DNA of 63,860 bases, filler included, from Klebsormidium nitens (Eukaryota; Plantae; Klebsormidiophyceae): the NCBI GenBank assembly GCA_000708835.1. It is 5 parts of 5 records of this genome, joined end to end, with 100 filler letters (N's around TTAATTAATTAA, not from the genome) between each part and the next. Parts side by side here need not be neighbours in the genome. Positions count along the whole stretch, not along the records: positions 36,476 to 52,039 come from DF238051.1; 4 more parts are not named here. One strand, 5' to 3'. The position numbers were made by a program, and so were the translations under genes. The notes beneath the pieces are model-generated. The model made no database searches, was not told the origin of the DNA, and saw only the letters and a program-made list of their open reading frames with translations. Shown here one piece after another: positions 35,975 to 54,561 of this stretch (position 1 is the first letter of the stretch; every line of letters starts with the position of its first letter).

Positions 35975-38900
35975 GTTGTTGGGCGCTTGCAGGACGCTGG
36001 TTGATTTGGACTGTTTGGAAAGAGAGACACGTGCGGAAGCTGAATGGAAGGCTTTTGCGGGTCTGCTGCAACTGGGCTGTGGACGGGGCTGTGGATTGGC
36101 ACTGCTGAGATCGAGAGCGCGCGGCGCAGGAAATTTGACAGGAACAGAAGGTACTGCCGAAGAAGCAAATTTTGCAGTAGTCTCTAGAGGACTGTCAGCT
36201 ACCTAAAGTCCTGAGCTCTAGAAAGGAGGAATGAGGAGGGCTTGGTGACAATGGATATATATTATATAGGTTTTGTGAGAGAACGGATCGCGTCCGGGGC
36301 ATATGTAATATTGAGAAAGTTACTACTGAATGCATGTAGGAGCTGGCGGCCCAACATGAACTTCGTAATCTCCTTNNNNNNNNNNNNNNNNNNNNNNNNN
36401 NNNNNNNNNNNNNNNNNNNTTAATTAATTAANNNNNNNNNNNNNNNNNNNNNNNNNNNNNNNNNNNNNNNNNNNNAGGCTTGCGCTGGGGGCTAGGGCGA
36501 TGGGGCGCGCGGGTCGCCCGATCATTAGTATCATATCACAGCCTCAGTAGCCTTAGACCGTCCGATGCGCACGTAGGCTGCAATCGTACGGCTTCGGGCC
36601 GGGAGGTGATCGCGACATAATTGTCCTGGCAGCTGCAGCGGTCGATGGAGAACGTGGGACTCCATCGACGGCCAAAATCCTCCAGGCTGTCGCGAGAACG
36701 GTTACTTAAAACTCTTGGCTGTAAATGGGTCGCGCGACATGGAACGGGTGGCAAACCCTAATTGGCTGGGGTAACCTAGGTACTGTATGTGAATCTTAGC
36801 CTCGGAAAGTCTGCACTCCAGATCTGCAGTCGACTCTCAACCCTCATTGGCGTGAATCTAACTTTTAAGGACAATTTCACTGTGGTTCAACTTCATTTCT
36901 CCAAATGTTACCTCTTGAGAGCTATTCCCGCCTCTAGCACTCGAGCATAGCCTCCCATGCCAATCTTGCATCGCTTCAAATGATGCCCGAAAGAGTTGAT
37001 CTTCCCATGGACTATTGGAGGGAGCTTAGACATGAGCTCATTTTGAACGGGAGCACGCGGTTCTGCCTTTGTGGCCATTGTGCATCGGCTTTGATGGAAG
37101 AGAGACTCGAGTTTGGGTGGACCTCGGATGTGGAACCGCTCGTGGACTCGGACGAGGAAGAGGAGTTGTTGAGCGAAGAGTTCATCATGTAGATGCATCA
37201 TCTCTCCCGAGCATTGAAGTTGGGTGAGATATATGAATGCCTCAATCTTTGTTGCTTTGATATAGATGTTGGTTGAGAAGTAGGTATCGGGAAATGCTTT
37301 TTTTCAAAGCAACAAATGCCATCTATGCTCGTAAATGCAACTAACCCGAAGAGGACGATGCATAAGTTGCTCGATGAAACGCTCTTTAAATGTGTTATTT
37401 GGTGAGCATTCCTAGCCAAATGTCTTGAGGATTGTTTATGAGTGAGAGGATAGGTTGATTGCGAGAGTCGTCACCTCCGAGATGCATTTTGTCCATCAAA
37501 TTGCTATGGTAAAACTGGAAAATGCAGGTTAGTTGTAACCTGATTGCTGTGTGCTGGTTAGCCTGCTGGTTTGGGATCTGGTTCTGTGGGTTAGCATAGG
37601 GGAACTGAGGTTATGAGCTGCTGGTTAGCCTAGCTCTGAATGCTGGTTAACTGCTGGTCAATGGTTCTTGAAGCAATTTTGCTCTTGTGTTGAAAGTTCG
37701 ATTGAATATGGTGGTTTCTGCCAGATGCAGGCCTGGTAGAGGGTGGAAGCTGAAGAGTAGGAGCCTCTAGTAGGTAAGAAAGCATGGGCCATATGAAAGC
37801 TTGCATGAAAACATGGTGTCTTATTGGTGGAATCTTGAATGGACCACATTGTTCAAAAAGAGCTGAGCCGTTGGTTGGCATGTTGCTTGGTAGCGTCGTT
37901 CGTTTGCATTGCCGCTGACTGGTGCTAGGGCTAGTGCCGATCAGCCTGACGATTTGCTAGCATCGTTTGCTGCTGCGGTATATTGCAGCGGTGTATTTGC
38001 AGTCATTCAAAAGCTTTGCCAACCTGCCATAGATTTAAATCAAAATCATACTTCCTTTGCAGAAGCGTTGCTCGCTGCGGGGGGTCTGGCTTGATAAGGT
38101 GAGTATTCAATGGTGCATTTTACATGCTCACAGTTTGTTTTTATTAGTTGTGACCTCTTCTCATGTGCACTAACTGGCAACTTCTCTGCTGTGACCGTTG
38201 AAGGCAACTTTGCACGCTATAACTTTCTAAGTTGCCAGCTAGCGATGCGCTGCAACCGCAAAACAATTCCGTTCTGTTATGTGACAATATATTTGTAGTT
38301 TCAAACTGCATGCTGTTCCAATTTGCAGATTGTCTGCCAGCCAACCGTCTGCAAAGCGTGCCGCCAGCCCCCAGCGATATGCCCCCAGCCAGCCCGTCAG
38401 CCAGACTGCCACCTCACCACCTCACCAGGTGGGCGACACATGTCTGCAATGCATTCTTCCTCAACAATCTGCCTCAGTCTGCCTTGCAATCTGCCTCAGC
38501 CATGCGCTTGCATCTTCTGTGCATCCTGTTCGTCTGTTCAACAATTCAACAGATAAACTTCTCTTGTGTTCGTGTTTACAAAACATGACTGTGTCTTGTT
38601 CAATTGTACTCATGTCTTTGTTTCATAGGCAACTAGACAGAATATCATGTTGCTGTGCTTTGTCTCATCATCAAATTGTTAACCAAATTATTGTTCTTTG
38701 GACAGATAGTGAGTGACTGGTTGCCACGTGCCATTCTGTCCGCCTGGTAAGCAGTGGGTCTGCAACCGTGAACGACCCCCTGCCCCCCATCGTGTCCGCT
38801 GCACCTGCAAGCCGTTTGCCCCCTGCCCCCCGCAAGCTGCCGCTCGCCCCCTGCCTGCCTGCCCCTCTGCCCCTGCCAGCTCGCCCCGCCACCCCGCCTC

Positions 38901-39519
38901 CCTGCCAGCCAGCTCGCTCGCCCCAGTGGGTTGCTAAGGTGAGCACCACTGCCCGAGGGGCCAACTCTGTCACTCACTTGCATGCTGTCAAAGGTTTTGT
39001 ATCATTGTGTACGTCACTGTTCTGTTGAGCAAGTTGAGCAAGTGTGTGTTTGCAAGTTGAGCACTCAACGTTGCTATTGTGTGACGAGTTATGAGGTGCT
39101 TGCTTTGGCCTGGAAGTAGATTTAAGAATGATCGGACTGCACAACCAACCGAACCAACTTTCTGAAAGACAAATCGTTGTTCCAGCTCGGCAGCCACCAC
39201 CCACCACCAGCAAGCGTCCCCAGCCAGCCAGCCCTCCACCTGCTATCTGCCATCTGCCACCGCTCTCCGAGGTCCCGGCCGCCAACCGCTGTTACCTATT
39301 CGTTGGCCGCCTGCCGCCACCCGCGCTGTGGATACTGTGTGTGAGGTGAGTATCAACCATTTAAGAAGGATGGTGTGTGGTTCATACAAAAGGTCTATCA
39401 CCGAAAGTCACAGTCCGTCAGGAACGGGTCAACAATCGAATCGACTTTGGATGTGTAAATGCGCTGGTTCGAAAAGAGCAAAACATGGAAGCTTTTTATC
39501 ATGCATTGAGGTCGTCGTA

Positions 39520-39601
39520 GCCCTCGGGCATGGTGCTCGAGTTTGACGGCAGGGGTGTACCCGGCAGTTGCTCGAGGATCAAAAAAAGCAGCGCAAGCTG
39601 T
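39520..39601 (+). ncRNA. Candidate structured RNA motif, copy 1
   Basis: GCC-CUCG-GGC hairpin; CUCGAGU/GCUCGAG stem around the invariant core GACGGCAGGGGUGUACCCGGCAGUUG; CAGC-GCAA-GCUG hairpin. Confidence 0.6.
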
Positions 39602-39908
39602 TGACACCTTTGTGTGGTAACTAACTTCGAAGACTTTAGAGTCGAGATCTTTCTGTCTAGAACTTTAGAGCCGGGGTGTAAAGGATTTTAACCGATCATG
39701 GGGTTAAAAGGCCTGTGGTTTTGGCTTGGGTTTGAAAACTGTGTGGCTTTGGCCTTGGCTTTTTATTCCTTAATTTGGCCTTCGACCTTTGAAAATAATG
39801 GCCTTAGACCACTGTGCGAGTTTATATGTGCCCTTCTGTGAGATGAGATTTTGTGGTAGAGCAAATACTTTGAACGGGTCACAAGTTCTGTGGACAAATG
39901 CCAACGTA

Positions 39909-39990
39909 GCCTTCGGGCACGGTGCTCCGTTCTCGACGGCAGGGGTGTACCCGGCAGTTGAACGACATCAAACAAAGCAGCGCAAGCTGT
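39909..39990 (+). ncRNA. Candidate structured RNA motif, copy 2
   Basis: GCC-UUCG-GGC; CGUUC/GAACG stem; invariant core; CAGC-GCAA-GCUG; outer stem AUGCCAAC/GUUGGCGU. Confidence 0.65.
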
Positions 39991-40108
39991 GTTGGCGTCC
40001 TGCGACTTTTGAGACTCTTTTCGTTATCGTTTTTCGTTCTTAAGTCGAGGTCTCCTAGCACACTCTTGCCCGACGCTAATAGTTGTCATTGCTGTATGTA
40101 CAGGCACG

Positions 40109-42007
40109 ATGCCTGAGAGGGCTGAGGTCGTCGCCATGCTTCTCCGCGTGCTGTGGCTCACCGTGTGTGGCGTCACGCGCCTTGTGCGCATCAACAACAA
40201 CACGACGCGCCGGAAGAAGGACGGCAACCTCATGATGCAGAAGCAGAACTCCCGCAAGGGCTCCGACCAGAGGGTCGCCGAGTTCCTGGGCTGTGACGGC
40301 GCCGTAGTGGTTGGCGTGGAGGTCGTCGGCAACCAGCTGGCGATGTTGCTCCGGAATGCGGGTGGCGAGTTCCGGGTTCTGCGGTGGAACCTGCGGCAGG
40401 GCGGGGCGCTCGACTGGTTCGAGTACGATGACGGCCGTTTCGCCGAGTACCCTGCGAGCTCTGAGCGGCGCAACGCGGCTAACTTCGAGCTCGCCGGCCT
40501 CCACCTCCCCCCCGAGTGGAAGGGCAAGGACATCCGGCTGGTCGAGGTCGATTGCACGTCAACGCCTAACCAAGCGGAGTGGGAGCTGCGCGAAACCTTC
40601 CCAAACCTCGGCAACGTCCCCTTCTCCCCTGCCCCCGGCTGGTTCGCCCGCTACCGGGGAGTCCCCAACATGCTGCTGGACCCGAACGGCTGGGTGGAGG
40701 CGGTCGTTGCCTGCGCGCTCGTCGTCGCCGCCCGCTACCCGGACCGCCCCGTCGTCGTCTGGATCGGGCGCTCGACCGTGTGGGAGGCCACCGGCTTCAA
40801 GAGCAAGGGGGACCTGCTCATCCGCAACTTCATGGCGACAGGGCGCCCGCAGTGCCTGACCATGGGGGAGCTGGTCGCCGACGGTCCGATCGCCGTGATG
40901 CACCTGTGCTGGATCGCGTACCTTTTCCTGTACGAGGAGCTGGCGTATGCCTACTGGTAAGCCATTGCACGTGTCACCTGTGGGTGGTATGGTTTCTCGT
41001 GTGGCATATGCCCTGTCGTTGTCGTGCCTTATGTGAGACAAGCCAAAGGATGTTGCCACCTTCGCACTGCTGTCCGTCAAGGCTCCTCTGACTTTGAACG
41101 TTTCGCTCTAACAATTCACGTTGTGGTTGTCGCAGGTACGATTTGACCAAGTTCAACGCCCCCAAGATCATGAACTATGCCATCAACGTCCTGCTGGTCT
41201 TCCAGAAGAAGGACTGCGTCCAGCTGTATCATGTGAGCTCACCAAGCTTCATCGAGCTTCAGCAAACATCCAATCAATGCTTGCTTTGTGTGGACTTGCG
41301 TGTGACTTTTAGGACGAACTTCGGTTTCTAATACTGCTTCGTTTCCATGTGCGCAGCCTGGCAAGTATCGGCACGACCAATTCTGGGCGCCAAAGGCCGT
41401 GCTCGAGACGGCGGAGTGGAAGCACATGGTGAAGCACTTTGGGTGGAGGGCCAAGCCCCCGTTGGGGGCCAACGCCATCGACGGCTTCTGCGCCAAGGTC
41501 GGCGTGGGCCCCCTCGCTTGGCACCAGCACATCGACGTGGTCAACATTCCAATGGCGAACCGTGCGCTGGACCTGCTCCGGGGCCTTCGCGGGGAGGGAG
41601 GGACGGTGAAGAAGCTGCCCAAGGTGGCGGACCGGCCGGCCATCATTGCTGAGCTCGGACGGGCGCGACGGGAGGAGGAGGCACGGCGGGATGCGGCCGA
41701 GGCGACGGGGGAGTCTTCCGGGGACGAGACCGCCGACGGCCGCGCTGGGTCGGAGTCGGCCGCGGGCCCGAGCGGGAGCGGGCCGAGCGTGTCCGCGGCG
41801 GCGCCGGCGGCCGGGAAGCGCAAGAGGAGGCACAAGAACCGCAAGAACTATGGCAACCGGCTAGAGAGGATCCATGCGTCGTACACGAACGGCACTTGGT
41901 GGCAGCGTGCGCTCGACATAATGAGCGCGCTAGACAGGGACGGGTTGGGTGGGATGTTGCCGGATAAGAAGTTCGAGCTAGCGTTGTCGCACATGCAGAA
42001 GAGTTGA
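40109..42007 (+). CDS. Orphan 3-exon gene, ~531 aa (40109-40956, 41136-41232, 41357-42007), with acidic/basic low-complexity C-terminal region and a possible NLS (KRKRRHK)
   Basis: Long GC3-rich open frames joined by phase-consistent GT-AG introns (TG|G and phase 0). No domain recognised. An acceptor at 40102 suggests an upstream exon. Confidence 0.75.
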
Positions 42008-42058
42008 ATAACACATTGAATTGCAACATCCTGTTATATCGTGATTGTTTCAATTCAA

Positions 42059-42141
42059 GCCCTCGGGCGCGGTACTCTAACTTCGACGGCAGGGGTGTAC
42101 CCGGCAGTTGGTTAGACTCCAAAGCATGCGGCGCGAGCTGT
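42059..42141 (+). ncRNA. Candidate structured RNA motif, copy 3 (about 50 nt after the orphan gene stop codon)
   Basis: GCC-CUCG-GGC; UCUAACU/GGUUAGA stem; invariant core; CGGC-GCGA-GCUG. Confidence 0.6.
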
Positions 42142-42223
42142 AACGTGGCCCATTGCATTCGAAAGTTCGTTGATTCGAGATAATTGTTTGAGGCTTGCTT
42201 CTCTTGATCAAATTGCCGTTGAA

Positions 42224-42306
42224 GCCTTCGGGCGCGGTGCTCCGAGTTTGACGGCAGGGGTGTACCCGGCAGTTGCTCGGCCATCAACGAAAGCAGCGGA
42301 AGCTGT
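42224..42306 (+). ncRNA. Candidate structured RNA motif, copy 4
   Basis: GCC-UUCG-GGC; CCGAGU/GCUCGG stem; invariant core; CAGC-GGAA-GCUG. Confidence 0.65.
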
Positions 42307-42583
42307 CTTGGCATTGATCTTTGAGCGGCAAACGTAGCGCTACCTAAGTGTTTCATTGTGATCAAATAGCAAAGGTATAGAGCTCGTTGAACATACACTC
42401 ATTGAGCGCTTGCAAAGCATCACATTACGCAAAAACGGCCTAGTTTTTCAATGTACAATCGCACACATATGTTCCCAATGTTAGCGACTTTTGTCTAGGC
42501 GCTCTAATAATCGTTCAGTTTCATACCCCTACTGTCTTCGCTATGCAACCAAAACCATCATTATGCGACAAATGATGCATGTC

Positions 42584-42914
42584 TTATATCGTCTTACGAC
42601 TACCAAACTTGCCACGGATAGTCGCCCACCATCTCCTGCATCCTGTGGGCTTGCCAAAGCACCAATTATATCCCTTCTTAGACGTAGCATCGTGCATCTC
42701 TATGTACGACTCCTCGACCGAATTTGCCTCCTGCTTGCTAAGCCCCTCCTGTAGGACCGTCAAATGGAAGAATTCTTTGAAAGGAGCGAATTTCTCCGCA
42801 TCCTTCCGCATCCTAAAAGGAGGACTCTTCGAGTGCGCCCTGAACCTAGCCTTAGGATCCTTGGACTGGCCGATGTACACCCGGCCGTTCACCACGTTCT
42901 TGATCATGTAGACG
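42584..42914 (-). CDS. GIY-YIG endonuclease domain (alternative terminal exon or read-through extension)
   Basis: (S/G)VYMIKNVVNGRVYIGQSKDPKARFRAH...EANSVEESYIEMHDATSKKGYN: GIY-x10-YIG motif, catalytic Arg (R..H), Glu helix and GYN motif. Confidence 0.85.
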
Positions 42915-42928
42915 CTGGTGCCATGTAG

Positions 42929-45367
42929 TCAATCCGCCTTGGACGCCTTCTTGGAGCCGGCCGCCTTCTTGCCGCCGGCCGGCTTCTTGGCGCTTCTGCA
43001 GGGAGAAACAAAGTCGTTTCAGAACTACGTCATGCGATCGAGCGTCTAATCACCAATCAGACAAAGTCCACATTTATTAATCAGGTGTTGAGATCAAACA
43101 TGTCCTGTTCAATTCGATCGGTCAACACGAAGGCCAAAAAACATCCGAAGTGTGCTCGACACAAAGTACCGCCACACGATTGCTTCACAATGGTGCCACA
43201 TGCAGAAGAGCCCGGACCGGAACTCACCCCATGGTCAGCTGGGACAGGGTCAGGTCGTCGTCGATGGGATCGTCGTCCAGCGCCGCCAGGTTCTCGGCGA
43301 CGCTCCCGCCAATGTCGAAGTCGGCCGCGTCGCCCATGTCATCAGCGAAGTAGTCCTCGTCGGGCTCGTCGTCAAAGTTCCTGCAAGCCAACAACNNNNN
43401 NNNNNNNNNNNNNNNNNNNNNNNNNNNNNNNNNNNNNNNNNNNNNNNNNNNNNNNNNNNNNNNNNNNNNNNNNNNNNNNNNNNNNNNNNNNNNNNNNNNN
43501 NNNNNNNNNNNNNNNNNNNNNNNNNNNNNNNNNNNNNNNNNNNNNNNNNNNNNNNNNNNNNNNNNNNNNNNNNNNNNNNNNNNNNNNNNNNNNNNNNNNN
43601 NNNNNNNNNNNNNNNNNNNNNNNNNNNNNNNNNNNNNNNNNNNNNNNNNNNNNNNNNNNNNNNNNNNNNNNNNNNNNNNNNNNNNNNNNNNNNNNNNNNG
43701 GGGGCCAGGGGGGCGTTGCGCTGCAAGCTCGAGAGCAAGCCGGAGCCACATGCAAGCTTGAGATCAAGCTTGAGCCACAAAACACGGTTCCATGTCCTAA
43801 CCAGTCGTCCTCACCTGGGGTCGCGGTTCGCCGGGTCCTCCTGCAGCTTCTCCAGAATGGACTCCGCCTGCTCGTTGGTGAGGTCCTTCCAGTCGTCAGG
43901 CCCGATGCTGTACTCCATGGAGAGACTTGCCGCCTGAAAGAAGAAGCAGACAAAGTTTGAGCAACTAGAAACGACCAGAGCTCAGGACCCCACCAGATTG
44001 CAGCACCTGAGATGCATGTAAGCCGCACATGACCGTTCGTGACAAGCTTGCCTTAGCGCGCGGTGTGAATGGTAGGNNNNNNNNNNNNNNNNNNNNNNNN
44101 NNNNNNNNNNNNNNNNNNNNNNNNNNNNNNNNNNNNNNNNNNNNNNNNNNNNNNNNNNNNNNNNNNNNNNNNNNNNNNNNNNNNNNNNNNNNNNNNNNNN
44201 NNNNNNNNNNNNNNNNNNNNNNNNNNNNNNNNNNNNNNNNNNNNNNNNNNNNNNNNNNNNNNNNNNNNNNNNNNNNNNNNNNNNNNNNNNNNNNNNNNNN
44301 NNNNNNNNNNNNNNNNNNNNNNNNNNNNNNNNNNNNNNNNNNNNNNNNNNNNNNNNNNNNNNNNNNNNNNNNNNNNNNNNNNNNNNNNNNNNNNNNNNNN
44401 NNNNNNNNNNNNNNNNNNNNNNNNNNNNNNNNNNNNNNNNNNNNNNNNNNNNNNNNNNNNNNNNNNNNNNNNNNNNNNNNNNNNNNNNNNNNNNNNNNNN
44501 NNNNNNNNNNNNNNNNNNNNNNNNNNNNNNNNNNNNNNNNNNNNNNNNNNNNNNNNNNNNNNNNNNNNNNNNNNNNNNNNNNNNNNNNNNNNNNNNNNNN
44601 NNNNNNNNNNNNNNNNNNNNNNNNNNNNNNNNNNNNNNNNNNNNNNNNNNNNNNNNNNNNNNNNNNNNNNNNNNNNNNNNNNNNNNNNNNNNNNNNNNNN
44701 NNNNNNNNNNNNNNNNNNNNNNNNNNNNNNNNNNNNNNNNNNNNNNNNNNNNNNNNNNNNNNNNNNNNNNNNNNNNNNNNNNNNNNNNNNNNNNNNNNNN
44801 NNNNNNNNNTTTCGACCACTCACCTGCCACACACGAATTCCGGAGGTGTGGTCGACCCACAGACGGATGGCAGCCTTCTGAGAGATGTTATGGTCGTAGG
44901 CAACGCCGAGCTGGTCCAGGAGCCACTTCAGGTCGCCTGTCGACGGAGAGATGCAATCGATGTTAAAGCGAGCCGTTGCGGGAGGGATACCACTTCACGG
45001 CTAGCGCAACAGGATACCTCGCATGTATGCAGGGCCAAGCAGAGGGATCATAGGCAATGATTCGACACATGGAGTCACTTCACTCACCGGAGGCCGGGTC
45101 CTCGTTGTGCTTGGCGTAGTAGCGCTCCCTGACCTTCTTCTGGTTGGTCAGAAAGTCGTCAACGGACCTCCACCCGCCAGTGAACTTCTTCTTGTACGTG
45201 CTCGGCTTTGCTCCGGTGAGATTTGCCAGCTTGCACTGCTTCTCGTTCAGGACAACAGGTCCGGAGGAGTCACGGCCGCGCTTGCGGTCGTTCCTGTTGG
45301 GAAGCTTCTTCTTGGCCTCCTCCTTGAGCATCGCAAAAAGATTCTTCTGCGTCATCTTGGCGGCCAT
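42929..45367 (-). CDS. Multi-exon gene of unknown function (Lys-rich N-terminus, Asp-rich segment, Lys/Ala tail); exons 45367-45088, 44936-44824, [gap], 43933-43815, 43380-43228, 42995-42929
   Basis: Canonical GTGAG donors and YAG acceptors with consistent phases. Two N gaps may hide further exons. Confidence 0.65.
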
Positions 45368-45542
45368 CTGCAGAGTATCAAAGGGGGTTTAGAACAATGG
45401 ATACATGTAAAGAACACTCCAGACGGCAAGCCCCCTATGTTGAGCCAAGTATGCAACGCACAATCTTCATAGAGCAATGGACCTTCTAGAATTTCCAATA
45501 CTTGTCTGTTCAATACGTCTTGTTCGAAAATGCTTCTATCAA

Positions 45543-45850
45543 TCAGCCGACGTCCTCAACATCGCTCTCTACAGGTCCTGCACCAGGGGCCTCCACTGCT
45601 TTGTTGCTTGCAATCGCGTACTGCAGAGCATTGTCAACGATCTCCTGAAGCTGCTCGTTCTCCCTACAAAGCGCCGCATTCTCTACCATGAGGTTCTGAA
45701 CCTTCTTCTCGCTCTTATCCAATGCCTGCTGAAGCTGGTGCCTACGACTTTCCAACTCTTGTAACAGACAAGCGGCCGTCTTAACGTCCTCCACCACTGA
45801 AAGCATATGCTCGTGAAGACACTGCCCCATTTTATCAGAGCTCCTATCCA
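45543..45850 (-). CDS. Coiled-coil protein fragment (3' part of an ORF; 5' part is in the gap)
   Basis: LQELESRRHQLQQALDKSEKKVQNLMVENAALCRENEQLQEIV heptad pattern. It is joined to the helicase ORF only through Ns. Confidence 0.45.
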
Positions 45851-46350
45851 CNNNNNNNNNNNNNNNNNNNNNNNNNNNNNNNNNNNNNNNNNNNNNNNNN
45901 NNNNNNNNNNNNNNNNNNNNNNNNNNNNNNNNNNNNNNNNNNNNNNNNNNNNNNNNNNNNNNNNNNNNNNNNNNNNNNNNNNNNNNNNNNNNNNNNNNNN
46001 NNNNNNNNNNNNNNNNNNNNNNNNNNNNNNNNNNNNNNNNNNNNNNNNNNNNNNNNNNNNNNNNNNNNNNNNNNNNNNNNNNNNNNNNNNNNNNNNNNNN
46101 NNNNNNNNNNNNNNNNNNNNNNNNNNNNNNNNNNNNNNNNNNNNNNNNNNNNNNNNNNNNNNNNNNNNNNNNNNNNNNNNNNNNNNNNNNNNNNNNNNNN
46201 NNNNNNNNNNNNNNNNNNNNNNNNNNNNNNNNNNNNNNNNNNNNNNNNNNNNNNNNNNNNNNNNNNNNNNNNNNNNNNNNNNNNNNNNNNNNNNNNNNNN
46301 NNNNNNNNNNNNNNNNNNNNNNNNNNNNNNNNNNNNNNNNNNNNNNNNNN

Positions 46351-49300
46351 NGACGGGACGGCACACGAGACAGCGCAACATACAGCAGACCGGGACAAAA
46401 CGCTTTTTTGACGTCCACGATGACCTTCCCACGAAGAGTCGCGCCCTGAGACCTGTGTGCGGTGATTGCATACCCGAGCATCAGAGGAAAAGTCGCCTTG
46501 AAATATCGCCTCTCATTGTGATAGAGGTTCTTTACTGAGGAGCGCCTGACCGCAACCTCTTTGCCGCCGTGGCAAGACATTTTCAGACGAATCTCATCCC
46601 GCATATCATTTTCAAGGCGCACAGAAGTAACCTCTGCGGTGGCCCCATTGGCAGCACCGTTTTCTAGATCGAGGTTCTGCGTAATCATCACCTTGGCACC
46701 GACCGCGACCCTTTGCAGCTGGTGAAAGTAAGAATCGGACAACCACTCTTTCAGATCGCGTTCGGCAGAGGCGTTGGTGACAACACTGACCTGCTTGAGG
46801 CGGTCGCCGTCCAAGAAAATGCAAGACGCGCAGAAGTTGTTGTAGTCGACCACTTGATCGCGATGGCTGCACAGGATTGTGGTGTCAGCGTCAAAAGTTT
46901 TCAGTGCTGTGGTCTTAGGGACGAAACACGGCCCCAAATAGTGGTTGATCTCATCTTTAGTCGGCTTGCGGTGCCGAATGATGCACAAGAATTCAAGAAG
47001 CCCTGGATCATCGTGGCGCATCGACCTAGTCAAGGCATGACACAGTGCAGAAGACCAATGGACAGATCTGCTTATGTGACACCGCTGGCAGACCTCGTCG
47101 TCGGGAAGGTCGTGCCTGCATACCGCAGGTAACTGAGCGTGGTCACCAAAAAGAATGAGCAGCTTGTTTTCCAGTGGGTCCCTCTTTCTAGTGACTTGCT
47201 GAAGGCGAAAGAAAATCAGGTCGAGTGTGGAGCAATCCATCATAGAGAACTCGTCACCGAGAAAGACATCGGCTTTGAGCAGGACATCATGCTGGAAGCT
47301 ACCAGGATACAAAGGAGAAAGGTAGGTCGACTTTGCAGGGATCGAAAAGCGGTTATGAGCAGTCACCGCACCAGAGCCTATGCGGGTTGCGGCGGATCCA
47401 GTGGTTGCAAACAAGCACACATTGAGAGACTGGGAATAAAACAGCGCGTGCAGAAACCGAAGCAGATAAGATTTCCCACAGCCAGGAGGCCCTGAGATGA
47501 CGTGCAAACCCCGAGGACGTTGCCTTATTGCCTCTACCAACGCAAGCTGCTCGACATTTAGAGTAAAGGAATCTGGAGACGGGGGAGGCTCGACGGAATC
47601 AAACAAATCAGACACGGTCTCCGGTTGAACAGCCGTGGGCCCATGAACAGAGGGCTTGACGCGAAGAAGGGGCTCGAACTCACCACTCTGGAGCGGACGC
47701 TTCTGCAGGATCTTGTTCAGGAGCTGGGCGCGTTGCTCAGAGGCGATCAGGTTCCGATCTGCATAGGATTGGAGATGCGTCTCGATGTCAGCTTCGTCCT
47801 TCACAATTCCCGCGGAGCTGGCATTCAATGAAGTAGGACCCCGAAGTGTTCTCAGGACTGAGAAGATCTGCTTCGAATCGGAACCTGACCGCACCGAGGA
47901 GGACATTGAAAAAATAGGCCTCCATCTGATGCGCCGGGTGAAAGTCACTGAATCTGACAAGGCCGCACTGGCTGCTGCGCTCGTATACAAAGTTTCCAAA
48001 GCCGTCCACACCAAGCGACTGCTTTCGGACCTTCTTATCTTTCGACAGGACAAATCCTCGAAAGTATTCGAAAAACGTGACGTTTTCAAGGGCAGAGGGA
48101 CGAGCGCAGTACTTCTCAATGGGGTGCACAATGACAGCAGATCTTGTGGAGGGGACTACAACCTTTGTTCTGAGAAACGGAGGCGCAGAGTCAATCGGAG
48201 TCACAGAGTCACTCCTGTCCACAATCGAAATCTCCATCACAGACATTGCAGCTTCGCAAGGGGAGACCGGCTGAGAAAGACAGAAGGCAGAGACAGCACG
48301 CAGCTGAGAATCTGAGAGGCCATGCAAACCCAGCGACTTGGCAGCTTGCGGATCTAGGTTGAGGGATCCAGAAGGCTCGCACTTCATTGCATACTTCAGC
48401 AGATAGTGAGACCAGGCATCGCTAGTCACTCTCTGAATGTTCAAATGTGCACCCCAGAGTAGGAGCAACACCGGGTGATACGGTACAACATATCGGTCCT
48501 GATGTCGCGGTCTGTAATAAATCCAACGCATCCGATCAGGACAGAAGGCGGCAGCGGAGCTTGGGTGCGGCTTCCATGGGAAACCGTACTTACATGGCTT
48601 GTCGTCTAGGAGGCAGAGACCAGGTCTGCAACGATGACGCTGCTTTCTCAGGACGTGCGCCTGAAGTTGGGCCTTCAGAGGGTCGTCAAAACGCTCGAAT
48701 CTTTTGGAGATCGGATCAAACTTCCCTGGAATAAAAGCGACAATCTCGTCAGTCACACGTACCACGTCTTCAGGCGCTACCCAGAGGATGATATGAGCAT
48801 GAGGGCTACCTCGTGACTGCATCTCGTAGCGCGTAACGTAGTGGAGAACCCTGCCAAGAACGCCATTTTTAGGGTCAAGAATAAATGTCTTCATGAACGT
48901 TCTCAGTCGGCTGTGAAACAACTTCAAGCACTCCACTGGAGCATCTTTCCAGGTGGCAGAGGAGTTGAAGCGGTCAAGAAATGCCTCCAAGTCATCGAAC
49001 TCCACCCAGCGCAACTCAGTCACCTCGTCTGCAGTCAAAGTCAAAAGAAACTTGGAAGGCCCCACTGATCGACCATACTGAGAAGATCTTTTAAGTTCTT
49101 CCGAAACCAGGCAGGAGAGCCAGCAACACACGAAGGTACCTTGTACTTTAAAACGTGCTTCATGACATCATCCAGAGACGCGAGAGGATTCTTCTTCTTG
49201 TAAGCAAGAATGGCGCGATCATACGCAATGGTTCTGGTCGTGTTCATCAAGACAACAGCTTTGCGAACCTGATACATCAGAAGCAAGTAAGGGAGGTAAA

Positions 49301-50411
49301 GTGTGAAAGGCGAGAAAAGAGCTTTCATGCGGGTGCGAAGGTATGTTGGCAGGGAGATCTTGGAGTCATAAGCACCAGAGCCAAAGGGGAAGAGGAAAGG
49401 GAACAAGGCGGTTTCCAAAGTGACCTTCTCATCGTCAATAGGACGCACAGGAAGCCCACACACGTTGGTGGTCAGCCGCTTCACAACATAGCCATTCCGA
49501 GTGACCAGAGACCCCGTGTCAAAAGCTGACGACTTGTTCAGTGAGGCATTCTGGGATATACCGTCAAGATTGGGGAAAGAAACCGTGTAAAGTAAACTCT
49601 GAACATCGTCTGCATCTATGCTCATGGACTGAAAAGGACCACGACCTCGGTTTGCCGACACGATGGATTCGATCGCCGACGAAGGCAAAACAGGGACACC
49701 AAATCGAGGATGCGGAGACTCAAGCATCGTAAGGTAGTTCTGAAAGAGAGAGTTCTGTTCTAGATTCAAAGCCAGCACGCTTTTCAAAAGGTCAGGGATA
49801 TCATCGAGGTTTGTGCACTCTCCGAGATTCGTGTTCCAAGCGATGAGAGGTCCGTCCAGAATGGATGAGTCTTCAAGCACACCGTGCGCATAGCCTTTGA
49901 GCTTTTTGATCATCTCCAAGCTTGCATCAACAAGGCCAAGCATTTGCAAGTGCAAAGGGTGAAGTGTGAGAAGCGACCGAACGTAAGCAGGCGAGAACAT
50001 TACTGCGTAGTTTTGCCAGGCATACGGTTTGTCCTTGCAAGCAGAACAAGCATACCACAGTCCGGCTTCGTTACGAGTGAATTCCTCCAAAAGAACGTTG
50101 CATAGAGCATATGGAGAAATTTCAGAACGAGGATTCACTGTGTGGAGCTTTGCATCAAAACCTCCAAGCGCAGTATGACCACAAAAAGCACAGCATGTTA
50201 CTCTCGTGAAAGCCTGACGGCAAAGAGCCCTCCAACCAGCCAGAGTCGTTGACAATGTGTTCCAATGTCGACAGAGCACATCTGATTCGGTGCGCTGAGG
50301 CGCAACGGCCATAACTTCCACAGAACCACAGTAGCTGAAGCGAATACATAGGAGATGGTAATGAACGAAGAGGTGAAATCTCACCTGAAGCGGAGGTTTT
50401 GATGAGGTCAA
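46351..50411 (-). mobile_element. Helitron RepHel (HUH Rep + PIF1-family SF1B helicase), interrupted by two single-base frameshifts (~49045, ~47810)
   Basis: LETALFPFLFPFG; GLPSFFLTLTAD (after frameshift repair); YEMQSRGSPHAHIILW (HUH); VVPYHPVLLLLWGAHLNIQ; YLLKYAMK; helicase GPPGCGKS, DEFSM, LFGDHAQLPAV, KVMITQNLDLENGAANG, FPLMLGYAITAHRSQGATL, GLLYVALSRV. Confidence 0.95.
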
Positions 50412-51016
50412 CGCAGATGTGGCTTCGAAGCCTGAGAAGTGCGGCAGTAGCCAAACACCAATCGGCCCGGAGAACCTCAGCGACTGTACAAGTGGGCAAG
50501 CTCAGGTTCGGCGAAGCAAAGTACAGACGCCGCGCGACCAACAACCTGCATCGGATATTGCACTGAGAGTTAGTATTCTAAGTCTGGGTTTTGTGAAAAT
50601 ATTTCAGGTCGTATCTCAGCATTCTAACGGCGGTCCGGACGAGGTATTCCTTTTTTAAAAACGTGATGCTTGAACAGAACATCCAACCAACTCTCAATGA
50701 GCAAGGCCTTTTCTTCCTTGGAATCTACGTATGACAAATCTTGAATGTAATGAAAGCATAGTGCAAGGTTGTCCACAGCTTGAAGATTGTACTGGCGGCC
50801 ATATCCAACGCAGTAAGAAACAGCGAAGAGAAGAGTACGAACAATAATCGAAGGTGAGCCAAAGGCTCCAACCTCAAAATTGCGTCTGTGCTGAGCTCGA
50901 AAGAAGTTTACATCGTGCTTGTTGGACCAAGTCAGAGCAGCGTCGAGCAATGCGGAGAACGTCTCATCTTTCACAACCGCACGTGGCAGAGCCATAGGTG
51001 TGTGAACACTCACCAA
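50377..51016 (-). pseudogene. Upstream, possibly spliced or frameshifted N-terminal coding blocks of the Helitron
   Basis: 130-aa ORF 51016-50624 and an exon-like block 50547-50377, co-oriented and abutting RepHel; could not be joined in phase. Confidence 0.35.
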
Positions 51017-51589
51017 TACACTGACCGGATGGGGATGGGGCAGGACGGGGCAGAGCTTGATGGGTCTCTGGTAAGGCTGCTGAAGGTAGCTGAGGGTGTG
51101 GGGGGTGTTGCAGGGAACTTGAGGGGAGCTCGCGATTTGCTGAAAATGTGATATGAAAAAAATGCTGGGTCAGAAAACGTATATAAGGTTTTCAATGCAC
51201 ACTGCATTGAGAGGAGCTTCTGGAAGTCTGGAAGGTTTGGAAACTTCTGCAGCCAACGCAACAAATCTTCTGGATCTGATTCAATGGCCCTCATTGCAGC
51301 TCCTAAGCAAATCTGCAGCTAAAAAGACCCCATTGGCCACCACTGGAACCAAGAGCATCTTATTGGCCAGTTTAGGAAGAGGCCAGCAAACTAAAAGATT
51401 GATTGGTCGATTTTCATGATTTTGATAAAAAAAAGTGACTCCTTTTTTTATCTACATGCAGGATTCCGATCCGCAGCCATTGAACGGCGCGCGAAATCCG
51501 GAATGAGGCGCTGCTTTTGGACCACACATGGAAACCACGGCCGGTGCCTTCATCTACATTTTACAACCTCGACTCCTAGAGTCGACACA

Positions 51590-51940
51590 ATTTTTTACCT
51601 TTGGTGCGATTCCTTTTTTGCATGTTACCAGTCGAAATGTATGGTACACCAGAGAATATATATGTGGTGCGACTCTCTGCTATGTGGCTTCAAACATAGC
51701 TTCAGTCGAACGGGTTTTAACACCGAAAATTCGATGAAGTGCAGAATTTTATAGACTGGTGCGCGACTGAAACTTTGACACCATGACGCGAAATCGGTGC
51801 GACTCTGCGCGAATTGCTTTCTGTCGAACGGAACATACATCGAAACATAGATTGGTGTAGAAATATTCTATATTAAGGTTCGACTCGGAGTTTTGACACC
51901 GTTCGGCAGTCTGCAAAAAAACGTTATTATTGACACACTA
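51590..51940. repeat. Short dispersed subterminal-type motifs (TGGTGCGAC, TTGACAC) upstream of RepHel
   Basis: tggtgcgatt 51602, tggtgcgact 51666, tggtgcgcgact 51757, cggtgcgact 51796; ttgacac 51775, 51893, 51930. Confidence 0.4.
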
Positions 51941-54561
51941 CAAGCACTCCGGGTCACTACGGAAGTCAGGCGACCCTACGGGTGCCAACGGACCAATCAG
52001 ATTGCGTAGAGCTCGAAATTGACCCACTAAGAGCCCCCTNNNNNNNNNNNNNNNNNNNNNNNNNNNNNNNNNNNNNNNNNNNNTTAATTAATTAANNNNN
52101 NNNNNNNNNNNNNNNNNNNNNNNNNNNNNNNNNNNNNNNTTTCCGCACATGGCTGCCGTATGTGTGTCTAGTTATCCTGCCAGCGCTTCGCTTAAGCTGG
52201 CCAACCGTCACACAATGGCTGCCAAAATTGCTCGCTTTGGGTGAGGACAGCAGCAGCTGTGGCGCATCAAACATCAAGGCTTTCAGAGCTTTGGAAAGCT
52301 GTGCTCAAGCCCTGCCTGACGAGACTAGGTGTAGGTTGTATTCAGCTTTCTGCAAGTATTACCCTTCTGGGGAGTTTCTCAAAGCATTTTGGTGGTGCCA
52401 GGACAGCAGCGGGACAGTGCTCAATTTGCTTCGTTGCCTGCAAAGGGGTGATTGTGAATGTAGCCAGCTCCAAGGGCACTGCAGCGATTTTTTGAGCGGC
52501 GGCCCTATTCTATCCTAGTTATGCAAGGTCTCCGCAAAGTCCAGACTCAAGAGAGAAGCTCCAGCTGATTGCAACGCAATGTGGATGGCTCGTGGATAGG
52601 AGCGTGCAGACCGTGCGCTGGCCCCAGGTCACGGCGGATGCATTGAGGATGCATTGGCAGCGGGCAGGTTCACCGCCTGGAGCAAGCATGGGTGAAGTGT
52701 GTGGATTGCATTCTAATTGTTGAATGTTGCATGGGGATGGTGTTGCTCATGTCGGTTTTAAGGTGCACTAATTGTTACCTCTCTTTCTGAGTAGCTTTTC
52801 ATGTTAGCTTGGCATTTGGTTTTGGGACCTGGTCGGATCATCTTCTTCTTTTTTGAGCCGGGCACCACCTTATTGCTTCAACCACTTCATGGCATGGATG
52901 CATCATCAAGCTGGTAAGTATTGACCTGTTACTTCACTTAGACTTTTTCTATTTGCATCTGGCGTCACCCGCGGAAAATGCCGGATCCTTCCTGCAAGGT
53001 TTCAGCTAGTAAGTAAACCCTTTGTCATTTCAGCCATCGCGGGCAATGTTCGTTCTCTTGTCTTTTGTCCCTTAACGCGGAGCTCAGTATATCCATCCAT
53101 ATTGTAGCCTCTGTCTCAAAAGCATTCAGTCTAAGTCCAAGCATCAGCGTCGCGCCTTTGCTCAAAGCCCAAAGTCAATTCGAATTGTGCCGTGGCAATG
53201 TTGCATGCTCTTTTGGCTATACCCATGCTTCTTGTATTCAAGTTGTGCCACCTTCGCTGCAATGTTGCATCTCGTGCTCCTTCAATGTAAGCCCATGCCG
53301 ATCATGCAGCTCGCGGTCTAGTGTTTGGTTTTGCAAAGCGCTGGTTCCTTTTAAGAAAAGATCCCCAAAGCTAAGAAGTACGGGGCAGGGGTTTTTTAAT
53401 GGCCCGGCGCCTTGCATTCCAACCTAGACTGCCATCAAGATGCCGCACGAGCTATCATCCTTCGACGCCTACCAGATGCTTCCTACCTGATCCGCTGTTA
53501 CGAACATCCGGGGCCTATACAATTCAGAGTCGGTTGGCAAGCACTTGTTGGTCAATGTTTTGAAGCCCTTTGAAGAAGCCTAAGCGTTTTATTGATTAGA
53601 CGGTAGGCTGCATAAATCTGGAGTTGTAGCATCGGTACGGTGTCTGGAAATAGCTGGTAGGTTGTTGTTCACCGCCATAAGCAAAAACCTCCAAACTCAA
53701 ACAATTGTATGCCATGAGAAGCCTATGGCTGCACTGGCTACGGCGTAACGAAAAGAGACCATCATTTGTGATTGTTAGGTTTGTGTTGCTAATCGGTGAT
53801 TGGTTGTAGGCTCAGCTCGTTTTTGACTCAATCTCCAGCAGCATCAGTGAGTCACGCCGGGCCTAGCCCCATGAGAACACACACAACATTAGGCAAATAA
53901 CAGGTAATAAGAAGCTTGAGAGACTTCACAAGCAACCTATGGTGGGTACCGGGAGTATCGACGCCGACGTAGGAGTTGAAGCTTCAACTTGAAAATGGCG
54001 CCTCCTTCCTCAGCAGCAGAATTCTAGGCATAGCGACTACAGGTGCATTTCTCCACCATATCACCCGCACAATAGCTCTTTAGAAAGCTCTGCTCAAGGG
54101 CTTCCCATTGATACCAGGTGCTCCCGCCCCTTCAAAGCCGGTGTTATTCAGTAACAGGGTCAGATCTGCTGCACACACTTAAGAAAGCAGTTCTGCAGCG
54201 CTTATGCACCACATGTTGCAGAAGGTAAGAACCGAGCTCTTCTCCCTAGGCTTACCTTTGCTTTGCTTCGCTTGTTACGTGCATTGCTTCTGCTCTGGCT
54301 GCCTTCGCTGCATCACATTCTACCTTGGCGGAATTACCACAGGCATTGTATGCTTTGTGCTTTTGTGCGATCCGTAGCTTGCATCCCAGGTGTAGCTCAC
54401 TCCATTCAATGATTGCCATCTGCTTGCTGTTGTTGCCTGCTGTCCCTTGCCCTTGTCCACCACCACTTCCATCACCATCCACACACGTACCGCTCTCACT
54501 GCACAAGGCGTGGATCTCACTTGCGGCCTCCCCCCCACGTTAGGAGGTGGCCCTAGCCACA

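Follow-up and report, generated by a model that had tools for sequence, protein, structure and literature searches.

The stretch of DNA analysed here, hereafter the window, comprises 63,860 nucleotides, filler included, of the Klebsormidium nitens assembly GCA_000708835.1, and the piece of interest within it is a 15,564-base segment of record DF238051.1 (positions 36,476 to 52,039). K. nitens is a streptophyte alga, and this segment carries on its minus strand the gene KFL_011020020, whose deposited protein (P0005) has 243 residues. The five exons of the gene add up to 729 nt, that is, 243 codons, with a translation identical to that protein. Exon 1 (45088..45367) starts with the ATG at 45367-45365, directly behind a 3' splice site, ctctgcag (AG at 45369-45368), and its translation gives the N-terminus of P0005. 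The borders of exon 2 (44824..44936) are GT/AG as read in the sequence, and exon 3 occupies 43815..43933; two runs of N, at 43396-43699 and 44077-44809, both fall inside introns. Exon 4 (43228..43380) encodes an acidic stretch and closes with the residues LTMG in phase 2 (ATG at 43232-43230, GG at 43229-43228). A preliminary description of this DNA had placed the exon end ACC ATG GG at 43228, in phase 2 and followed by the donor GTGAGT, and it is indeed found there.

The last intron (42996..43227), with 232 nt and the borders GTGAGT...CAG, is removed in the RNA contigs of two sequencing runs, X1 and X2. It leads into the coding part of exon 5 (42932..42995), which starts as G-SAKKPAGGKKAAGSKKASKAD, SAKKPAGGKKAAGSKKASKAD being a Lys-rich tail whose final codon is GAT (42934-42932). 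Immediately thereafter comes the hexanucleotide TGA CTA (42926..42931, with TGA at 42931-42929 and CTA at 42928-42926), a candidate leaky stop together with its context. From this CTA the same frame remains open for 114 codons (42587..42928), a putative read-through extension which encodes a complete GIY-YIG domain and ends at a TAA (42584..42586), also read in the sequence. The deposited model of KFL_011020020 finishes at the TGA, and the nuclease reading frame is missing from the K. nitens protein set; if the stop is read through, as argued below, this gene model would be truncated.

The open reading frame (ORF) behind the TGA matches the Pfam family GIY-YIG (PF01541) with an E-value of 4.5e-11, and its 43.3 bits clear the cut-off of 22.6. 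When 20 members of the family were combined into a profile, this matched I-TevI (1mk0/1ln0) with an E-value of 3e-10, V6-Y7 being aligned with I5-Y6 of I-TevI. The AF2 model of the domain reaches a pLDDT of 87 and shows the expected alpha/beta fold with a sheet of three strands, at residues 4-11, 17-22 and 54-63, and Foldseek returned I-TevI as its top match (TM 0.66/0.76), with UvrC also among the best matches. The catalytic set Y7, Y18, R28, H32, E72 and N88 is entirely present and aligned with the I-TevI catalytic domain; across the 20 members Y18, G20, R28, H32, E72 and N88 are invariant, and the first tyrosine, Y7, is kept in every member covering that region. I-TevI is the best match by both profile and fold and all catalytic positions align with it, but identity is only 21-24%, and the partner domain of the K. 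nitens nuclease is N-terminal and unrelated. The cut-off of TIGR01453, the profile for group I intron endonucleases of the I-TevI type, was not reached (31.6 versus 56.05 bits). The nuclease ORF has no C-terminal module and forms part of a spliced nuclear mRNA instead of lying inside an intron. The ORF after the TGA is a genuine, intact GIY-YIG nuclease domain, for which cleavage activity is predicted.

Expression of this part of the gene was followed in four RNA assemblies, compared over positions 41900-43395 of the window as assembled contigs with a depth of about 3; that they derive from RNA is indicated by the absence of the 232-nt intron from the contigs. The junction 43228>42995 was seen in both X1 and X2, which come from two different studies, and the preliminary proposal of a first acceptor with an exon start at 42995, reading on to TGA CTA, was confirmed in these contigs with the TGA unedited. 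In X1, record 3 runs from exon 4 through this junction, the TGA and the position of the second acceptor proposed in the preliminary description down to 42835, with zero mismatches. Since this record is continuous, the nuclease ORF shares its mRNA with the upstream exons, and that mRNA retains the stop without editing or splicing. The depth over the nuclease ORF (2.6-4.4) equals the depth over exon 4, and expression of KFL_011020020 is very low. Two candidate explanations were rejected because of this continuous contig: RNA editing of the stop and, for K. nitens, a stop-removing mini-intron of the kind present in the Volvox gene models described below.

The same arrangement was looked for in relatives of the nuclease. 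When the nuclease piece served as query in a word search, three close proteins of 76-83% identity emerged, and an exhaustive search retrieved 708 relatives at E<=0.001, mostly proteins of 100-120 residues; a metagenome scan yielded only eight remote GIY-YIG relatives (28-59%), uninformative on the stop codon. The DNA of the loci of 12 relatives was examined, all picked by protein match alone, their upstream sequence not being known beforehand. Among the 13 locus types, nine have TGA-CTA or TGA-CTG as the single in-frame stop between an ORF with a basic tail and the nuclease, so that the TGA-CTA which the preliminary description wished to see checked in homologous copies is widely kept; TAG-GAA and TGA-ATG occur once each, and two types are stop-less. 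Written with the following base, the context is TGA CTA C in the window, in L001 (a Logan contig colinear with the window) and in L002/L003 (identical in two runs); TGA CTA G in L004 (an intron-less, cDNA-like contig) and in L006-L008 (nuclease 56% and upstream protein 31% identical); and TGA CTA T in L005, from Volvox carteri. A second copy of V. carteri (L020) has TGA CTG T, a further Logan contig (L023) TGA CTG G and a contig from a JGI metagenome (L024) TGA CTG C. L004 illustrates the layout: a 252-residue ORF is followed by TGA CTA G and then by the nuclease, all in the same frame.

The remaining loci are more varied. L021 and L022, from two runs, have TAG GAA (L021:741-746 and L022:741-746), then TTA or CTA, after a KPKKD tail, in frame and with no ATG before the catalytic tyrosine. 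In L011, an ENA assembly in which the upstream coding sequence is uncertain, the TGA is followed directly by ATG (L011:900-1040), possibly with an intron between. No stop is seen in L009 and L010, from Logan and ENA contigs: the former holds an uninterrupted ORF of 263 residues (L009:594-1385), and in the latter (L010:279-935) the basic tail may sit in another frame.

A spacer of 1, 6, 7, 9, 11 or 15 codons separates the stop from the catalytic tyrosine, with whole-codon differences only, and therefore insertions and deletions have occurred but have kept the frame. No in-frame ATG precedes this tyrosine in L005, L006, L020, L021, L023 and L024 (six loci of five locus types). In Volvox the stop stands two codons ahead of the tyrosine, within the motif itself, and the deposited models P0031 and P0028 span the in-frame TGA with a 37-nt "intron" (GTGACT...GGCAG; L005:9045-9082 in GL378323.1 and L020:9115-9152 in GL378395.1), thereby losing strand 1 of the domain. 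Such an intron is implausible; it is an artefact that the stop has introduced into the annotation. Because the layout recurs in distant relatives, the comparison indicates that it is not a chance property of one copy.

The pattern of substitution around the stop bears on the same point. Among four sequences of the Klebsormidium clade, the nuclease domain shows a non-synonymous divergence (pN) of 0.08-0.19 and a synonymous divergence (pS) of 0.55-0.88, with a pN/pS of about 0.15-0.2. In the seven codons between the stop and the ATG that follows it, pN is lower than pS in all six pairs (e.g., GGC/GGT/GGA, GTC/GTT, TAC/TAT), and over the first 18 codons past the stop the two Volvox copies show seven synonymous differences and a single non-synonymous one. 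Evolution of the Lys-rich tail that precedes the stop is approximately neutral. Judged by these patterns, the codons past the stop evolve as coding sequence, under purifying selection. Moreover, GAT TGA CTA is identical in the window, L001, L002, L004 and L006 despite nearly saturated synonymous sites, which suggests that the nucleotides around the stop are themselves constrained.

Taken as a whole, these data favour translational read-through of UGA-CUA as the probable source of a nuclease fusion. The sequence UGA CUA, best with G at +7, is an experimentally supported consensus for high read-through (PMC4359377), and the leaky context recognised in the preliminary description, in frame with the nuclease, matches it. 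The notion that one gene makes two isoforms, one of them carrying the nuclease, retains comparative support as far as the read-through route is concerned; the route through an alternative acceptor, discussed below, found no support. Read-through also accounts for all of the observations.

Several points weigh against this reading. Translation past the stop is inferred from comparison, and the consensus itself comes from work on mammals, fungi and viruses rather than on green algae. Conserved RNA structure after the stop was not found (-8.3 kcal/mol, zero covariation), and therefore the rate of read-through may be low, about 1% or less. The stop-less L009 and L010 and the TGA ATG of L011 mean that the device is not universal in the family. 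In the Klebsormidium clade the ATG eight codons past the stop is conserved, so that a truncated product may arise there, and assembled contigs of low depth (about 3) may miss rare isoforms. Finally, L001 differs from K. nitens by frameshifts in exon 4, exon 1 and the helicase of a neighbouring gene (single-base frameshifts in L001:4044-4203, L001:2891-3300 and L001:1462-1640), exon 4 having 160 nt instead of 153 and three frame changes, while its nuclease ORF is intact. L001 is a decaying copy or an error-prone contig and carries little weight, though its TGA CTA is kept.

The rival that survives best, albeit an unlikely one, is that the nuclease is translated independently, by reinitiation after termination, by leaky scanning or from a non-AUG start, the start in Klebsormidium being the ATG at 42907. 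The window, L001, L002 and L004 all share this ATG, located 24 nt past the stop; L011 has its ATG directly after the TGA, and gene callers predict ORFs of 106-107 residues. The catalytic Tyr7, however, is the TAC at 42910-42908, and the ATG (42907-42905) encodes Met8. As the preliminary description had correctly read, it is the sole internal ATG and comes after the motif tyrosine. Because strand 1 covers residues 4-11, a start at Met8 loses half of this strand together with the first catalytic tyrosine, and the six loci without an in-frame ATG before the tyrosine offer no such start at all. Independent initiation would require neither the shared frame nor spacer changes by whole codons, and it leaves the synonymous-biased change in the codons before the ATG unexplained. 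Read-through is compatible with each of these features.

It is very unlikely that the locus is a dead relic, in which an ancestral fusion gene has acquired a nonsense mutation and the copy decays with no nuclease being made. Such a view draws on the apparently single-copy state of the element in the K. nitens assembly, on the very low expression, on the decay of the related copy L001 and on the existence of stop-less relatives. Nevertheless, the stop is common to lineages in which pS is nearly saturated (up to 0.88) while the nuclease stays intact with a pN/pS of about 0.15-0.2, and it recurs in Volvox and three further lineages. Purifying selection has thus acted for a long time since the stop arose, and therefore a nonsense mutation that kills the domain does not fit.

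The preliminary description had also proposed that the donor at 43228 sometimes joins a second acceptor with an exon start at 42914, skipping the basic tail and the stop and fusing LTMG to VYMIKN. The sequence for this is present: CAG (42917-42915) precedes the C at 42914, in the right phase, and GG plus C would give Gly ahead of Val-Tyr. Furthermore, two consecutive contigs of run X2 (records 5 and 6) break at this point, the first having its end at 42914 and the second its start at 42917, exactly at the AG of this acceptor, for which a coverage gap at a depth of about 3, a variant bubble or a graph branch are candidate causes. The site (42914..42917) is nevertheless peculiar to this genome and without RNA support. 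Its AG (42916-42915) is absent in L001 (ATCAAC) and in L002/L003 (CTCACT), and in L004 and L006 the closest AG does not have the right phase; hence homologous copies do not conserve both acceptors. Of the two junctions to be compared, 43228>42995 was seen in two RNA runs and 43228>42914 in none of the four RNA assemblies (contigs, depth about 3); record 3 of X1 continues across the site with no splice, and the donor shows no break in record 6 of X2, where a real branch would need one. Volvox, L021, L023 and L024 keep stop and frame without such a site, and the glycine which the upstream exon was thought to supply in order to complete the motif falls on a position that is not conserved, the residue before Val/Ile-Tyr being S, N, T, A, Q, H or K in the family alignment. 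Use of this acceptor is therefore highly improbable.

Volvox and its relatives make selenoproteins, which lends some background to the idea that the UGA encodes selenocysteine. This is hardly credible here and was rejected: a transposon precedent exists in the Naiad Penelope-like elements, where an in-frame UGA just before the GIY-YIG motif is annotated as a stop (PMC8557442), but the Naiad UGAs replace a conserved cysteine and are accompanied by a selenocysteine insertion sequence (SECIS), neither of which is true of the K. nitens gene. Its stop ends a low-complexity tail at a variable distance of 1-15 codons from the motif, in stop-less relatives this position is occupied by N, S, T or Y with no conserved cysteine, L021/L022 use TAG, which is unable to encode selenocysteine, and an Rfam search detected no SECIS in the 3' region of the window at E<=1 nor in eight related loci at E<=10.

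Upstream of the accessory gene KFL_011020020 lies a neighbour overlooked in the preliminary description, the Helitron Rep/helicase (RepHel) gene KFL_011020025 (45543..50411, minus strand), with Helitron_like_N and PIF1 helicase domains. It adjoins KFL_011020020 on the same strand, 175 nt away, and L001 is colinear with the window from 48418 to 41353, including the order of RepHel and accessory gene. In the cDNA-like contig L004 (L004:240-425), fragments of the Rep ORF are joined to the exon with the accessory-gene ATG, and the whole helicase is skipped. A 5' splice site within the RepHel ORF (47678..47684, minus strand; exon end 47684, AGTG followed by GTGAGT) matches the L004 junction, and the window and L001 share both this donor and the matching acceptor AG at 45369-45368. 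Expression of the accessory gene may accordingly proceed from a spliced, subgenomic-like RepHel transcript. Both Volvox copies also have Rep fragments as neighbours, which in L005 are on the opposite strand and in L020 follow downstream; being differently placed, they leave the link with Helitrons to rest on neighbourhood and on the L004 transcript. One RepHel and one copy of the accessory gene were found for K. nitens, and the element appears to be single-copy in the assembly.

The upstream protein of 243 residues matched no Pfam family, a word search found it in its own clade only, and the ESM Atlas gave no usable match. AF2 returned helices only, with a pLDDT of 42; the predicted helical region covers residues 7-163, and the acidic stretch and the basic tail come after it. 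Support for homology with the upstream protein of Volvox is no more than moderate (hhalign probability 60%, E 8.5e-5). By analogy with GIY-YIG enzymes of modular build, the upstream protein may supply DNA or chromatin binding to the nuclease.

Some further features were noted in the 3' flank. A convergent transcript on the plus strand (window 41399-42488) has a depth of 265-800, compared with 2-4 for the nuclease gene, that is, approximately 100-300 times higher, and it ends at about 42450-42490, some 25 nt from the nearest contig end of the nuclease mRNA (42513). Its ORF of 202 residues (41399-42007) belongs to no Pfam family and is conserved in L001 with 65% amino acid identity. Past the final stop, despite 3' regions that are otherwise diverged, two short motifs are kept: GCGCCTAGA (42494-42502, minus strand) in the window, L001 and L002, and GCCGTTTTTG (42430-42440, minus strand) in the window, L002 and L004. 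They may serve as signals where the two converging transcripts end. Repeat units of about 90 nt occur at 39513-39999 and 42054-42320 of the window, both within the 3' part of the convergent gene and past it, and L001:5156-5391 matches them.

A mechanism based on read-through can be outlined as follows. KFL_011020020 would be a Helitron-linked accessory gene whose mRNA holds two in-frame coding parts around one UGA-CUA. Normal termination would give an abundant product of 243 residues, consisting of a helical core with the acidic stretch and the Lys-rich tail. Now and then the UGA would instead be decoded by a near-cognate tRNA and the ribosome would proceed 114 codons further, giving an extended product of about 358 residues whose C-terminus would be a complete GIY-YIG nuclease related to I-TevI. 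The purpose might be to hold the nuclease at a low level compared with the short product, and the nuclease itself might nick or cut DNA for the benefit of the Helitron. The self-limiting control of a toxic endonuclease, an idea already put forward in the preliminary description, is plausible.

Read-through at UGA-CUA is known from mammalian LDHB, MDH1 and AQP4, from fungal peroxisomal isoforms and from Sindbis nsP3/nsP4, and the hexanucleotide in K. nitens is identical, with G at +7 in L004 and L006. In Sindbis virus a catalytic domain, the viral polymerase, lies behind the UGA-CUA stop. These systems resemble the one proposed here in that no downstream structure is needed and that a minor extended isoform gains a function. 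They differ in that the putative K. nitens extension is a whole enzyme domain of 114 residues and not a short targeting signal, and in that the gene is linked to a DNA transposon and belongs to green algae. In gammaretrovirus Gag-Pol (the UAG of murine leukaemia virus) and in plant RNA viruses, an abundant non-catalytic protein is made together with a scarce enzyme fusion, the ratio being set by the ribosome. The K. nitens gene shares with Gag-Pol the proposed ratio logic and the setting in a mobile element; however, Gag-Pol and the plant viruses use UAG with a pseudoknot or CAR-YYA in RNA genomes, whereas the K. nitens family uses UGA-CUR, with no detectable structure, in a spliced nuclear mRNA.

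Another related system is HelenSM92, of the HLE2 family of Sphagnum magellanicum, a Helitron-like element reported with a GIY-YIG domain that was called "captured" (PMC11417382). Compared by description only, the two cases, both from the green lineage, are alike in that a Helitron-like element is accompanied by a GIY-YIG domain; the HELIANO paper is silent on the expression of this domain or on a stop codon (PMC11417382). No description of translational read-through in genes linked to Helitrons came up in the literature searches.

The case is evenly poised for a broader proposal, in which the UGA-CUR leaky stop would be an old, conserved expression device of a Helitron-linked gene family in chlorophyte and streptophyte algae, setting the ratio of a helical acidic/basic protein to its GIY-YIG fusion. 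A recurrent annotation error accompanies this family, the nuclease being absent from the protein set in K. nitens and deprived of its first strand in Volvox, and similar recoded genes have likely been overlooked elsewhere. If the proposal is true, it would represent, as far as the literature searches reached, the first description of programmed translational read-through for a DNA transposon of eukaryotes, as well as a rare case of cellular read-through in the green lineage, and it would furnish a natural, short and structure-free read-through signal for study in green algae and plants. DNA transposons would then join retroviruses and alphaviruses as mobile elements in which the supply of a dangerous enzyme is limited at the ribosome, and the GIY-YIG domain, so far only "captured" in the Helitron literature, would acquire a concrete role as a regulated nuclease.

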